DNA of 64,000 bases. Origin: Podarcis melisellensis. Taxonomy: Eukaryota. The stretch is from assembly GCA_964234715.1 (NCBI GenBank), contig OZ174291.1. One strand, written 5' to 3'. The notes under the pieces were generated by a model that saw only the letters and a program-made list of their open reading frames with translations, did not search any database and was not told the DNA's origin. The position numbers and the translations under genes are program-made. Shown here in pieces: positions 28,377 to 63,998 of the stretch (its first letter is position 1; each line of letters begins with the position of its first letter).

Positions 28377-28528
28377 CAATTGCTCCCCTGAGAGCACCTC
28401 CAGCAGGCGCAGCAACATCCGCCCATCTCTCAAGTCGCTGTACAAATCACTGATCCGGCACGTGACCCGAGCCAGGTGAGAGTTGACCCATTTGGTGAAG
28501 GTTTTCTTCTGCACGGCCTCTCGCTCAT
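28377..28528 (-). CDS. SPTBN2: coding exon 2 ([19 protein letters not shown]...SGEQL), CH1
   Basis: ttgcag|AT acceptor, TTG|GTGAGT donor, 152 nt; actinin-type ABD motif QKKTFTKW. Confidence 0.97.
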
Positions 28529-35000: not shown

Positions 35001-36067
35001 TGTCAGTAACCGCTGCTGCAAAAAGGACCCTTAAGTTTGTCTAATTTTGCGACAAAGTTCACAAGAGCACATCTTTGTACTCTGCGATAACAAAGCAGTG
35101 AGTGAAAATAACACTGACCTGTTTTGCTCACATAGAATGAAGGAGGGTGGATGACATTTCAGGGGAATCCAACACCAAAAAAAGAGTTTGGGCCCAGATC
35201 ATACGGTGGTAGTGGATGCTGCCCCAGAAATTTGGGGGTGAAACCTTGGCAAGGTAAATAGGCTGAGGGTGACAGGGGGATGGGACGACTGCACAATGTG
35301 GGACAACAGCCCTATTCGGTGGGCTATAACTTTTTCAGTTATGTGGACTACTCTCCCCGGAGACACACAGCTGGCACTTACTTTGCTTGCTTTTTTGGTG
35401 TCGAAAGGAGGTCATTTTATGGCTCCCCCAAGGAGGATTTATTGCTGTTTTTACTGCAGTTTCATTTTTAGGAGATTTTTTAAAATTACAATTTAATGCA
35501 ACGTAAGTTTTTGAATTATTCTGTTTTTTTTATTATGGGTAGCTGACTTGGTACCTTTGACTGAAAGCAGGGTGCAAAGCTTTTAAAAATAAGTACAGTA
35601 AATGAAAGAAATTGTGACTGTCTGTGTTGAGGGGGAGGGAGAGTTGGGGTCAAGGTGAGCATTCCTAGAACAGTACTTCCCACCAAAGAGGGGCAGGGTG
35701 TAAAACAGAGAAGTCTTTGGAGTCACAGAGGCTGTATCTGTCAGTGCCTGTCAAGGCTCCTCTCTCTCTTGACAAGGTCTCCTGCCCTCCAGGAAAATGG
35801 GGAAGAAGGGTAGCTTTGGCAGGGGGCAGCTGGGCACAGCCCCAAAGAATCTCAACCACGTCGCTGTGTTTGCCCCATGCAAATCCAGCGTGCGTTCAGC
35901 TAATTCCTGGCATCACTGTGCGGATTAGGGTCCCTGCCGCCACCGCTTAAGTCAGGCCAGAGAGATCTTGCAGGTTGGGGTGGTGGGGGGAAGACTCCTG
36001 GCTGAGAGCTTGCCCCCCCAAATCTCTACTGATCACCCCCCTCCCCGCAATTCTCCAGAGTGCCTAC

Positions 36068-36200
36068 CTTGAAGTTGCTTGAACCTGCCCTCCAACACGT
36101 TGGCATACTGGACTGCGTTGATAAATGCGGCCGGGGAGAGCTCAGGAGGGGGAGAAGGACCCTGGATCACCTCCAGCAGTTCTGGATCAGGTTCATACAT
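36068..36200 (-). CDS. SPTBN2: alternative first coding exon (MYEPDPELLEVIQGPSPPPELSPAAFINAVQYANVLEGRFKQLQ), 133 nt, ends phase 1
   Basis: ATG with A at -3; donor CAAG|GTAGGC in phase 1, same phase as the canonical exon; LSPA...Y-N-LEGRFKQLQ matches the known alternative N-terminus of short beta-II spectrin. Confidence 0.88.
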
Positions 36201-36896
36201 CCTTGCGGCTGGGGTACCTCCACTTGGACCACCACAGCAGCCCCCTGCCCACCCACCCACCCCGGAAAAAAACCAACCGCAGTTGGGCCCAGGTAGCAGG
36301 AAGGGAAGCTCCAGCACCTTGGTGTGAGTTGAGCGTTTCAAGAGAGTTTTGCTGCCCCCTTCCAGGCGAGGGCGGCAACCCTGGGAAATTTACATAAAAA
36401 CAGGTTGGGTTGCTCTGAATGGTGTGTGTGTGTGTGTGTGTGTAGAGTACACTCACTGAGCCCAGGCAGACATGGAAAGGGGAGGGGAATGGGTTGGGCA
36501 GTCTGCCCACACACACACAATTCGATAGTCTGAAAAACTAGCAAATCTCAGCATTGGGGGTTAGCCAAAGCTCTTATTGAATAGGGCTCAGGGCTCTACC
36601 CTCAGCTCCAGACCAGGATGGGTGAAAGGGGACTGGGGCTCAGGACTACTGGATCCTTTCTCTCTTCCCCCTCCTCACCTTTCTAAGAGGGGACTAATGA
36701 TTCTGGAGCTTGCTGAGGTAAGTTTATAAAAAAGATAAGACAGGGTTGTATCCAACTAAAGTTGACTCCGAACCAAATTTAGCCATGCCTGTTCATGTCA
36801 ATGGGTCTACTAAGAGTATGAATAACATTGGAAACAGCCCATAGTGGGGGGCTGAGGTCTCTTCTTCTCTTGCTTGACTTATCCTTGACCTCCAGC

Positions 36897-37059
36897 CAGT
36901 GGCGTAGCGTGGGTTGTCAGCATCCGGGGCAAGGCAAGTAATTTGCACCCCCTAACCCGTAGATTTGCGCCCCCTGACCCGTGGATTTGCGCCCCCTAAC
37001 CCCCAGATGTTGCGCCTGGTGCGGCCGGCCCCCCCTGCACCCCCCACGCTACGCTACTG
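36897..37059. mobile_element. hAT-type MITE with CAGTGGCGTAGCGTGGG TIRs and 3 internal ~23-bp repeats
   Basis: perfect 8-bp TSD cctccagc (36889, 37060). Confidence 0.88.
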
Positions 37060-44203: not shown

Positions 44204-44360
44204 CTGCCAGCGCCTTGATGCGAGAGCGCTCGAAAAGCCGGGCCGAGCTGTTCTCATTGTCCCAGTCTTCGTCGGCCACTTCCCAGCGGTTGTTGATGTC
44301 GTTGTACTGCTGCTGGATCTCCAGGCTGTCATAGTCGGTAGGGGAGAGGGTGCTGCTCAT
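44204..44360 (-). CDS. SPTBN2: coding exon 1 (canonical N-terminus MSSTLSPTDY...SRIKALA), 157 nt, ends phase 1
   Basis: ATG at 44360 in GCCATG context; donor GCAG|GTAAAG at 44204; acceptor ctcaag|GCG at 44390 gives a 30 nt leader. Confidence 0.96.
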
Positions 44361-44487
44361 GGCGATTTCGGCAACAGGGCCAACGTCCGCCTTGAGGTGA
44401 AAGAGGGAACAGTGAGAGCCTTCAGGCACAAGGCCAACTCATACCTAACCAAGTATTCTTTTACGTCCATTCTAAAAAATGTATATA

Positions 44488-60382: not shown

Positions 60383-62040
60383 CGAGGAGCATTGATTAAA
60401 GATTCCCCCTGACATACTTCCCCATGCACTGAGACAAACGAAACTGGGCACAGTTATTAGTCCATCTCTACATAGCTACCGGCAAGAGTCACACACTTCT
60501 CCCATCGCTTTATGCAGCTGTGGAGACCTCATCTGTAGAAGTCGGCAGGTTGCCTCAGAAGCCACAACTTGACATCAGAAATCAGCATTTCATTGTATGG
60601 AAAAAGCTTGCCCTTCAAAAATAACTTCATGGTTGGAAAGAGGTGGAAGTCCAATGATGTGAGGTCAGGAGAATAAGGAGGATGAGGAAGGATTTCATAG
60701 TCACAGGACCATGCTTCCATCGGTGCAACGTGCAAGTTGTGAATCAAGGCATTATCTTTCTTTTTTTAAAAGATTTTTATTGAAGTTTCAAAGATTTATA
60801 TAAAAACAAAACAAAAGTACAAACAAACAAAAATAACAAAAAACAAGTATAATTTCAATCCCTTATTTTCTTATAACTTACTTCCCCGACTTCCTCATAC
60901 CTCCCCTTTCTGTATTCCAATTTCTAATTTATTAATTCAGCAAATCCTTTCCCTTGTTTTTCATTTAGTTTTTAACCTTTCTTTTCATTTTACTTATCCA
61001 TTACAGCTGGAAACCACGTAATTTCTAAACCAACGTCATTCTAACATTCATTAATTTTGCAATGTTTCTTAAGATAGTCCTTAAATTTCTTCCAATCTTC
61101 TTCCGCTGTCTCTCTCCCCTGTGAATCAAGGCATTATCCTGCAGGAGCATTATCCTTTGGTCAGCATACCACGCCTCTCGATTTTGATGGTCTTCTGAAA
61201 TTTCAACAGCAGTGAAGCGTAGTATGGCCCAGTAATTGTGGTACCCTTTGCCAGGAAATCCATCACCACTACTCCATGCTGGTCCCAAAAGACCGTGAGC
61301 ATGACCTTGCCCACTGACGGTTGGACACATGCCTTCTTTGGAGGTGCTGAGGCAGAGTGCTTCCATTGTTTGGACTGGGATTTATAATGATGGACCCATG
61401 TTTCGTCCTGAGTAATTAGTCTGGCGAAGAAGTCATCATGGTTTTGTGACACATGGCCAAAGGAGCCTGTGAGCATGTGACTCGTTCCTGCTTCTGGAAA
61501 GGCATCAGCAGCTGGGGAACCCACCGTGCAGACACCTTTCCCAAATGGTCATGGGTGATTTTTTCTACAGAGCCCATACTGATCTTGACATCTGCAGCTA
61601 GTTGGCGAATGCTTACATAGCGATCCTCCAAAATGGCGGCCTCCACTTGCCAGATGGTGTCATTCATCAATGACCAACTGTGGTTGCCCAGGAATGGCAG
61701 CCGTTCCACTGAAGTCTGACCACACTTGAACTGACGATGCCAGTGCTTGACGTCATACGATGGGGCATCTTCCCCATAAGTCCCTTTCATCTCACTGAAC
61801 GTCTCCCGTGGTGTGTGCCCTTTCAAGTACAGGAACCTGATGACCACTCTGCTTCAACTGGTTCCATTATCAGACATTACTCCACATTAGCACCAGTAAC
61901 AGATAAACTGTTAGGAGTTCAGAGCTACAAATTACCACATTACCTATGGAGAGTTGTATCATTGCTGTGATGGGACGATGAGCTGCTTGTGCGTAAAATG
62001 CAAGTCCCTCAGAGTTTGATCAGGTTTTCAAACCTCTGCC
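60383..62040 (-). mobile_element. decayed mariner (D,D34D) DNA transposon, frameshifted transposase pseudogene
   Basis: HTH N-terminus (VIRFLYLKG...), WVPQLL, TQDETW, QDNA, HPPYSPDLTSLD; 34 residues between 2nd and 3rd Asp once the L1 insert is removed; TA|CGAGG terminus at 60383. Confidence 0.9.
60757..61119 (-). mobile_element. 5'-truncated L1/Tx1-like LINE 3' end inserted in the mariner
   Basis: 19-bp TSD tgtgaatcaaggcattatc (60738-60756 and 61120-61138); encodes ETAEEDWKKFKDYL like the 45451 copy; A-rich tail. Confidence 0.88.
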
Positions 62041-62373
62041 TGTGACGGAGCCCCTCCAGCATGGCTGCGTCAATCACTAGTAGAATCCGAAAGTGGCTGC
62101 TTTCGGAATCTTTTCCAACATAAAAGCTCTTTAACGGAAACACGTCGTCTGGCCTCTCGGCGTGACAGTTTCCGGCGAGGTGTGGGTGTCCCTATAGGAG
62201 GTCCTGAGACCTCCCCACTGTTTTCGCTGGAAGCGTCTCTGAGCCATCCCTCCGACTCACTTTCCCTTGGAGTTCTTGCTCGCCCTCTACTGGTTCCCTC
62301 TTCCGCTGCTACTCCTCTCTCAACCTCAGTGAGCCTTTGCGCCCCCGGCGCTTTAGATGGCAGTTCCCTGACA
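62041..62373 (-). repeat. putative 3' LTR (~333 bp)
   Basis: starts TGTCAGGGAAC right after purine tract GGAGGGGAGGTGGA, ends GCTCCGTCACA (imperfect terminal inverted repeat, TG...CA); 5' LTR not in window. Confidence 0.75.
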
Positions 62374-63998
62374 TCCACCTCCCCTCCAGGGCCCCCTTCA
62401 CCCCCTCCCGTCTCCTCCCCTACTGGCGGTGAGGAGGTAAAACCCCTGAAAGAACCTCCCTCATCTTCCGACGTCGCGAACACTTCCCTCCACTTGTTGC
62501 TGTTCCTACTCTCTCGGTAATCTTCGTCATCGGAGTCCACTCCCTCTTCCAACTCCGACTCCGCGAACCCTTCCATTTCCTCTTCCTCATCGGTGGTGCC
62601 GAAATACTCCCTCCTAAACCTTGCTATCGGCTGAGGTTTCCTCGGGAACCTTTGGTGGAACGTTTCTGTTAAAACCTCGTCATTGACTTCCTCTGCACTT
62701 ACCCAGGTGTTTTCTGACTCCGGTTCCCCTTCCCACGCCACCAAATACTCCACCTGATTTCCCTTCCACCTGGAATCGAGGATTTCCGCTACATGGTTGC
62801 GGCGTTCCCTCTCTTCCAAGGCTGGTCCCCTGACGTACTCCCCTTCACGTCCCCCCCTGTATGGTGACAGTAACGACCTGTGGAACACTGGGTGCAATTT
62901 CATGTGGTTGGGTAATCGGAGTTTGAAAGCTACCGGGTTGACCTGCTGAATGACCTCAAAGGGTCCCAATCTTCTGGGCCTCAATTTCTTACAACCCCCT
63001 TTGAACGGCAACCCTTGGGTTGACAACCACACTTGATCCCCCACCCTTATGGTTTCACCTTCCCTTCTGTTCTTGTCTGCCTGCTTCTTATATTGTGCCT
63101 TAGCCCTTTCTAAGTTGAGCTGGAGCTGATGATGGATCGCTTCCATCTCTTCTACAAAATGTTCAGCCGCTGGGACGCTCCATCTCTCCCCTCCTTCCCC
63201 TGGAAATGCCCTGGGGTGACACCCGTAATTAGCCAAAAAGGGACTCATCCCTGTGGACACATTCTCCGCATTATTGTAGGCAAATTCTGCCAACGCCAAC
63301 TTTTCGACCCAATCGTTCTCTCTGTCAATGACATAACACCTCAGATATTGTTGAAGAATGCCATTTGCTCTTTCCGCCTGCCCGTTGGTTTCAGGGTGCC
63401 GGGCAGTTGAAAAATTGACTTCCACGTGCAGCAAGCTCATGAGCTTCCTCCAGAACCTGGAAGTAAATTGTTTGCCGCGATCTGAGATCACCCTCAAGGG
63501 AGCCCCGTGCAACCTAAAGATGTGTTCTACAAACAACTTCGCTGTTTCTTCCGCTGTGACTGCATGTGAGCATGCTACAAAGTGGCACATCTTAGTTAAC
63601 AGGTCTACTACTACCATGATGGCTGTTTTCCCCTTGGACTTTGGCAGATCCGTCATAAAATCTATTGATATCGCTTCCCAAGGCCGTTCTGGTGTGGGTA
63701 ATGGTTCTAATAACCCTGCCGGCGCCCTTCTTTCCCCTTTGGCTCGCTGACATTGGTCACACCCTCTTACATACTCCCTTACATCTTCCCTCACCTTAGG
63801 CCACCAAAATTCCCTGGTAACCAACCACATGGTCTTGTGTTGTCCAAAATGTCCCGCCGTGGGGCTATCATGCAACTGCTTGAGTACTCTCCCCCTCAAT
63901 TCACCTTCGGGTATATACAGTGCCCCTTTGTAATACAATGCCCCATTTCTTTCCTCAAAACCTCCGGGACTCTCGCCCTCCCCCCTGAGACCTCTGAG
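62070..63998 (-). CDS. Gypsy pol C-terminus: integrase (HHCC, DDE, GPF module) + chromodomain + acidic/basic tail; open to window edge
   Basis: HDSPTAGH...CDQC zinc finger, ISIDF / ISDRG / ETNGQAER catalytic motifs, RLGPFEV, YLVAWEG...NTW; no stops from 63998 to 62070. Confidence 0.93.
   Translation of the reverse strand, partial: LRGLRGEGESPGGFEERNGALYYKGALYIPEGELRGRVLKQLHDSPTAGHFGQHKTMWLVTREFWWPKVREDVREYVRGCDQCQRAKGERRAPAGLLEPLPTPERPWEAISIDFMTDLPKSKGKTAIMVVVDLLTKMCHFVACSHAVTAEETAKLFVEHIFRLHGAPLRVISDRGKQFTSRFWRKLMSLLHVEVNFSTARHPETNGQAERANGILQQYLRCYVIDRENDWVEKLALAEFAYNNAENVSTGMSPFLANYGCHPRAFPGEGGERWSVPAAEHFVEEMEAIHHQLQLNLERAKAQYKKQADKNRREGETIRVGDQVWLSTQGLPFKGGCKKLRPRRLGPFEVIQQVNPVAFKLRLPNHMKLHPVFHRSLLSPYRGGREGEYVRGPALEERERRNHVAEILDSRWKGNQVEYLVAWEGEPESENTWVSAEEVNDEVLTETFHQRFPRKPQPIARFRREYFGTTDEEEEMEGFAESELEEGVDSDDEDYRESRNSNKWREVFATSEDEGGSFRGFTSSPPVGEETGGGEGGPGGEVDVRELPSKAPGAQRLTEVERGVAAEEGTSRGRARTPRESESEGWLRDASSENSGEVSGPPIGTPTPRRKLSRREARRRVSVKELLCWKRFRKQPLSDSTSD

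Follow-up and report, generated by a model that had tools for sequence, protein, structure and literature searches.

Background

The closest described counterpart of the exon studied here is the alternative N-terminus of short beta-II spectrin, which we take to be that of SPTBN1 RefSeq isoform 2, or 'Elf3'-type protein. The beta-II paralogue has its own first exon in RefSeq. Its alternative coding exon lies just before the exon that begins with DEREAVQKK, is joined to it at a phase-1 junction and replaces the whole N-terminus preceding the CH1 domain. For beta-III spectrin, the N-terminus has been defined as comprising residues 1-52, CH1 starting at D53; its helix S37-A52 contacts actin in the structure 6ANU, and without the N-terminus, actin binding is lost and the toxicity of the SCA5 mutation L253P is rescued (PMC8810934). 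The Kd given there for the wild type with the canonical N-terminus is ~74 uM.

In this work, comparative sequence analysis was applied to a stretch of 64,000 nucleotides from the lizard Podarcis melisellensis (assembly GCA_964234715.1, contig OZ174291.1; hereafter the window), in which a preliminary description had proposed a hidden alternative first coding exon of the beta-III spectrin gene, with a second N-terminus resembling that of short beta-II spectrin. Here, we compare this exon with its counterparts in other vertebrates, in the beta-II gene and in amphioxus, and weigh the ways in which it may be transcribed, spliced and translated.

Results and discussion

Structure of the beta-spectrin gene

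The minus strand of the window carries a beta-spectrin gene, which can be identified as SPTBN2 (beta-III spectrin). Its canonical first coding exon (44204..44390, minus strand) has an ATG at 44360, from which 52 codons extend to 44205 (MSSTLSPTDYDSLEIQQQYNDINNRWEVADEDWDNENSSARLFERSRIKALA); an acceptor AG is located just upstream of the exon at 44392-44391, and the split-codon G at 44204 is followed by a phase-1 GT donor. The encoded 52-residue peptide matches residues 1-52 of beta-III spectrin in 6ANU with an E value of 6e-24, as against 7e-10 for beta-I spectrin, and exon 2 of the window reads ARVTCRI.., the same as in a gar protein named 'non-erythrocytic 2-like' by NCBI. The shared next exon (28377..28528, minus strand), at which CH1 starts, begins with (D)EREAVQKK, reads on to ...GEQL and ends at a GTGAGT donor; its acceptor has a strong polypyrimidine tract and reads ...ctttatctttgcag/AT GAG CGA, the slash marking here and below the splice boundary, with the exon start at 28528.

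Along the minus strand, the putative alternative first coding exon (36068..36200) stands between the two, in the order 44360 (canonical), 36200 (alternative) and 28528 (shared DEREAVQKK exon). It comprises an ORF of 44 codons (MYEPDPELLEVIQGPSPPPELSPAAFINAVQYANVLEGRFKQLQ), with the ATG at 36200-36198 and the last codon ending at 36069, and the split-codon G at 36068 (phase 1), which ends the exon. The splice donor GTAGGC occupies 36062..36067 on the same strand, with the GT at 36067-36066, and reads G/GTAGGC. Since the G at 36068 and the AT at the start of the exon at 28528 together encode D, the junction FKQLQ-D(G/AT)EREAVQKK is in frame. The ORF, donor and acceptor as re-read here agree with the coordinates, the phase and the in-frame junction of the preliminary description. 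The Kozak context, which had been called good, should be downgraded to adequate, as caaggATGt has an A at -3 but a T at +4.

Other features of the window include a 22-bp tandem repeat at 36941-37016 (3.4 copies, consensus ATTTGCGCCCCCTAACCCGTAG) and, on the minus strand at 60532-61853, stop-free stretches (..DETWVHHY.., ..PYSPDL..DFHLF..) that adjoin a Gypsy pol ORF at 62073-63998 and resemble a transposase of the mariner/Tc1 type.

Orthologous exons in other vertebrates

Approximately 38 sequences carry the signature ...LSPAAF[IV]N..QY..[VI]LEGRFKQLQ followed by G/GTRAG, and the window exon likewise combines the C-terminal motif LSPA-x11-LEGRFKQLQ with a phase-1 GT donor. The lizard comparison set consists of the window and three unspliced ORFs (P0001-P0003), located on short contigs of genomic DNA from related species (L001-L003) and obtained by a word search and by a search of 1.8 billion representative sequences. 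The latter search gave 30 matches, all of them short ORFs ending in ..LEGRFKQLQ, because the library collapses isoforms into 50% clusters. These matches and their cluster members, among which one (P0121) is named Homo sapiens, continue either with G[KRE], corresponding to the unspliced donor G/GTRAG, or with DEREAVQKK in spliced models. In every unspliced homologue, FKQLQ is followed by G[KRE], and the donor of the relatives is G/GTAGG or G/GTAAG. The word search covers proteins of 0.55-1.75 times the query length, and full-length isoforms fall outside this range; protein searches within it returned no spliced lizard fragment, and when only the gar alternative exon (region 1-42) served as the query of a word search, it matched nothing but itself.

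The spliced form is represented by a spotted gar fragment (UniRef100_W5M2Y8, P0004), in which MYEPSHADLQRR... is spliced onto DEREAVQKK. It is like the lizard exon in its MYEP.. start, its core and its DEREAVQKK splice, and is orthologous to it. A second gar protein (P0040), named 'spectrin beta chain, non-erythrocytic 2-like' by NCBI, has the canonical N-terminus and has an intron-2 read-through tail in common with W5M2Y8, so that both N-termini are annotated for one gar gene. In the teleost Pampus punctatissimus (L004, chromosome CM137667.1), the canonical exon is found at ~4.8 kb, the alternative exon at ~10.0 kb and the DEREAVQKK exon at ~20.4 kb; the alternative exon, part of the protein model KAM7374241.1, matches the lizard exon in its core and in the exon order, and is orthologous as well. 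The gar and Pampus versions differ from the lizard exon in being known from automated annotation only. A 5.5-kb Logan contig (L005) was found, by a motif scan and one local BLAST, to contain a mammal-type canonical exon and, ~2.3 kb downstream, an exon reading MNGNG...LLSPAAFINPAQYASVLEGRFKQLQ/GE; as its protein cluster is confined to one contig, we do not regard it as human. As judged from these sequences, SPTBN2 of teleost, gar and mammal type carries an orthologue of the lizard exon at the corresponding place.

Selection on the reading frame

In the 15.7-kb interval from the canonical exon to exon 2, 29 ORFs on the sense strand start with ATG and are no shorter than 44 codons, and the ORF by itself is thus within chance expectation; it is its conservation that raises it above chance and marks it as a real exon. 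Across the four lizard sequences, the 25-codon core ELSPAAFINAVQYANVLEGRFKQLQ is identical at 24 of 25 residues, and 15 of its 75 nucleotide columns are variable. Thirteen of these variable columns are third codon positions, two are first positions and none is a second position (P = 3e-5), and ~77% of the non-coding columns adjoining the exon are variable. By the Nei-Gojobori method, codons 21-45 of the window differ from those of L001 by 11 synonymous and 1 non-synonymous substitutions, and from those of L002 by 9 synonymous and 0 non-synonymous ones. The core dN/dS is ~0.01, and the two other frames show the opposite pattern. Evolution has been much faster in the first 20 codons (dN/dS ~0.6), as expected of a disordered head.

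The ORF could also have arisen by chance inside a conserved non-coding element, for instance an intronic enhancer, with no exon at all. The 29 ORFs of similar size in the interval would be consistent with such an origin, and conserved blocks are also present in the flanking intron among lizards. However, the substitutions in the ORF follow a codon periodicity, the amino acids are kept from teleosts to mammal-type sequences despite nucleotide divergence, the conservation ends exactly at the conserved GT donor, and annotated spliced proteins exist. Selection on the frame and the presence of homologues effectively refute the chance origin, which we consider hardly credible. A coding exon in the proposed frame was a central claim of the preliminary description, and is borne out by purifying selection, by the positional orthologues and by the annotated splice in gar.

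One of the conserved intronic blocks, CTAATCCGCA..GTG.TGCCAGGAATTAGCT, is located on the minus strand at 35890..35930, ~140-180 nt downstream of the donor. It is nearly invariant in the four lizard sequences, and its TAATCC and AATTAG resemble homeodomain-type sites; the block may act as an enhancer or in splicing.

Upstream region and expression

The region 36201..36420 (minus strand) was delineated as the putative 5'UTR and proximal promoter. It contains blocks conserved among the lizards, which together span ~200 nt before the start codon. A single further ATG is present there, at -195, inside the conserved block TTTTTATGTAAATT. Neither a CpG island nor a clear core promoter was found upstream of the exon (CpG o/e 0.19). 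The non-coding flanks gave no alignment beyond lizards, and they are therefore uninformative on a deeply conserved promoter. The upstream block CAGAGCA.CCCAACCTGTTTTTATGTAAATT at 36380-36420 (minus strand), which has the -195 ATG, is followed by an indel-rich, G/T-rich stretch, and a (CA)n microsatellite is found just upstream at ~36420-36447.

Hints of expression were sought in sequencing runs. Thirteen small contig runs, for which the RNA status is a guess, come from 4 studies with a single species label; they contain 0.29-0.53 of the words of 36040-36400, which is about what the exon alone would give, and six DNA-sized runs contain 0.79-1.0. These word shares are no more than suggestive of expression of the exon in this lizard. 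A splice of the exon to DEREAVQKK is present in the gar annotation and, for the beta-II paralogue, in the Logan contig P0035; all spliced forms used in the comparisons are natural database proteins.

Translation start and splicing of the exon

Translation very probably starts at the ATG at 36200. This assignment follows from the M conserved in every lineage among the homologous exons compared, from in-frame stops upstream of the ATG (4-11 codons away in L001-L003 and 14 codons away in Pampus), from a leader that is devoid of ATG for 178-195 nt before the start codon, and from the loss of a cassette frame in L003. The last point concerns cassette use, in which the exon would be spliced in frame between the canonical exon and exon 2 and would insert ~47 residues, not replace the N-terminus. 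An AG at 36210-36209 in the window would indeed delimit an exon of 141 nt whose frame is compatible with the phase-1 donor of the canonical exon, the alternative exon follows the canonical one in frame in models from goby (P0034, beta-III) and Goodea (P0038, beta-II), and seven runs with an identical word share of 0.35 fit an exon of ~140-150 nt with fixed ends. Yet this AG is preceded by G-rich sequence, with the polypyrimidine tract absent in all four lizards, and in L003 it lies 9 nt from the ATG instead of 8, so that the cassette frame is lost, with an in-frame TAG just upstream. Moreover, the fish cassette models are automated predictions, and a start of translation is in keeping with the conservation of the ATG, with the variability of the head and with a gar model that begins at M. 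We regard cassette use as quite improbable.

Even with translation from the ATG at 36200, transcripts could begin elsewhere: without any internal promoter, the canonical and alternative exons would be mutually exclusive, and transcripts from an upstream non-coding exon would skip the canonical coding exon to reach the alternative one. Such a non-coding exon exists, as implied by the acceptor that precedes the canonical coding exon; an AG is also present 8 nt before the alternative ATG, and the upstream sequence offers no CpG island or recognisable core promoter. On the other hand, the acceptor context before the ATG is weak, and the ~200 nt upstream are free of ATG and conserved among lizards, as a contiguous 5'UTR and promoter would be. 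Two runs contain 0.53 of the words, above what an exon starting at 36208 could give, and the beta-II paralogue has a first exon of its own in RefSeq. Mutually exclusive splicing without an internal promoter is thus an unlikely arrangement. Between transcription from a CpG-poor promoter just upstream of the exon and use of an upstream non-coding exon, we lean slightly towards the promoter.

Proposed exchange of the actin-binding N-terminus

Translation from the ATG at 36200 would give 44 residues (MYEPDPELL...) in place of the canonical 52, the alternative exon being spliced via the phase-1 donor (36068/36067) to the shared exon at 28528. As the canonical exon encodes exactly residues 1-52, the alternative exon would swap the whole module, and would remove precisely the published actin-binding N-terminus before CH1. 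The replacement would consist of a disordered, variable head and a strictly conserved core of ~24 residues, LSPAAFINAVQYANVLEGRFKQLQ, which is predicted to be helical and continuous with CH1 helix A. In this scheme, we infer both the transcription from the CpG-poor promoter directly upstream and the altered actin binding.

The alternative N-terminus and the canonical one seen in 6ANU (PMC8810934) are of a similar length class, and both are placed directly before D53 of CH1, whereas the alternative N-terminus is without the canonical acidic segment DWDNENSS. No significant similarity between the two was detected by BLASTP. By HMMER, the alternative core AQYANVLE-GRFKQLQ aligns weakly, over 16 residues, with residues 37-52 of 6ANU (SSSARLFERSRIKALA). 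An origin of the alternative exon as a duplicate of the canonical exon was considered and rejected, given the missing BLASTP alignment and the weak 16-residue HMMER alignment. None of the solved structures searched contains the alternative N-terminus. An AlphaFold2 model of the gar fragment has residues 1-20 disordered and a helix running from residue 21 into CH1 (pLDDT 87-95 from residue 31); it carries little weight, because CH1 was truncated and the input was a six-sequence alignment (A2) of natural spliced forms. The comparisons and the model suggest that the isoform may keep a pre-CH1 helix but present another actin-facing surface, with no acidic segment, which would change its affinity for actin or the regulation of binding. 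The isoform may bind actin differently, since exactly those 52 residues are replaced on which actin binding and L253P toxicity depend. A conserved isoform differing in precisely this segment would amount to a naturally occurring variant of the module that binds actin.

Paralogy with beta-II spectrin and age of the two-exon design

The sequence P0035, from a 926-nt Logan contig, has an exon 2 of the beta-II type behind the short-isoform N-terminus. A BLASTP comparison of the window peptide with residues 1-36 of P0035 gave 16/25 identities at an E value of 2e-6. Both sequences contain LSPA, 11 residues and LEGRFKQLQ at identical spacing, and the exon of the short beta-II isoform has the same position, junction phase and mode of replacement as the window exon. 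The two belong to separate genes, exon 2 of beta-II reading ARVSCRITDLY and that of the window gene ARVTCRI... They also differ in the middle of the core (AYTGQVPYNYNQ in the beta-II exon against AAFINAVQYANV in the beta-III exon), and across vertebrates the beta-III version varies much less than the beta-II one. Teleost beta-II models from Gymnodraco, Xenoophorus and Ilyodon were matched as well. The paralogy proposed in the preliminary description is thus supported by the identity with P0035, and the SPTBN1 N-terminus quoted there is confirmed by a database sequence.

A comparable arrangement is found in amphioxus. On a contig of Branchiostoma belcheri (L007, KV411719.1), the canonical exon is located at ~10.0-10.1 kb, the alternative exon at 15.8-16.0 kb and the shared exon at 18.9 kb, and two amphioxus RefSeq models (P0045, P0091) represent isoform X1 with the alternative N-terminus (MASRNSS...HKYKALQ-DEREMVQKK) and isoform X2 with the canonical one. 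The exon order, the phase-1 state of both donors and the ..KALQ ending of the alternative exon are like those of vertebrate SPTBN1 and SPTBN2, but the amphioxus alternative exon is more divergent and, apart from its ending, hardly alignable with the vertebrate exon. The amphioxus and vertebrate alternative exons are plausibly homologous, and the similar layout indicates that the design with two N-termini is probably older than the vertebrate spectrin duplications. That it predates the split of beta-II and beta-III, as had been suggested, is well supported by the beta-II paralogy and by the amphioxus exon order.

Previous annotation of the exon

Among the ~8.4 million papers searched, none was found that mentions the motif or describes an N-terminal isoform, alternative first exon or alternative promoter of SPTBN2, and a review of beta-II spectrin covers C-terminal variants only. 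The exon, called hidden in the preliminary description, is not so everywhere, since Ensembl/UniProt and GenBank models from fish contain it. Automated annotation already includes the exon in the gar UniProt fragment, in the goby model and in the Pampus 'hypothetical protein'. The last of these (KAM7374241.1, at 10001-17146 of L004) fuses the alternative exon with unrelated sequence, and near this exon the models P0034 (goby) and P0038 (Goodea) also seem to be erroneous. The present analysis thus draws attention to fish annotations with such a faulty join or with the exon as a cassette.

Conclusions

The observations are together best explained if SPTBN2 has a true alternative first coding exon, orthologous among vertebrates, paralogous to the beta-II exon and derived from an old design, and we consider this joint explanation probable. 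As a broader and tentative proposal, possible but short of likely, beta-III spectrin would have a second N-terminus throughout bony vertebrates, apparently including mammals, which was inherited from a two-first-exon design of the chordate ancestor, binds actin differently and may define a separate pool of the protein. If this is true, a tissue- or compartment-specific pool of beta-III spectrin would exist that could bear on the biology of ataxia.

With this exon, SPTBN2 joins those beta-spectrin genes in which either of two coding exons can supply the N-terminus, an arrangement known for SPTBN1. The pattern observed in teleosts, gar, lizards, mammal-type sequences and amphioxus indicates that beta-spectrin genes have long shared the trait of paired first coding exons, which is not a peculiarity of SPTBN1.
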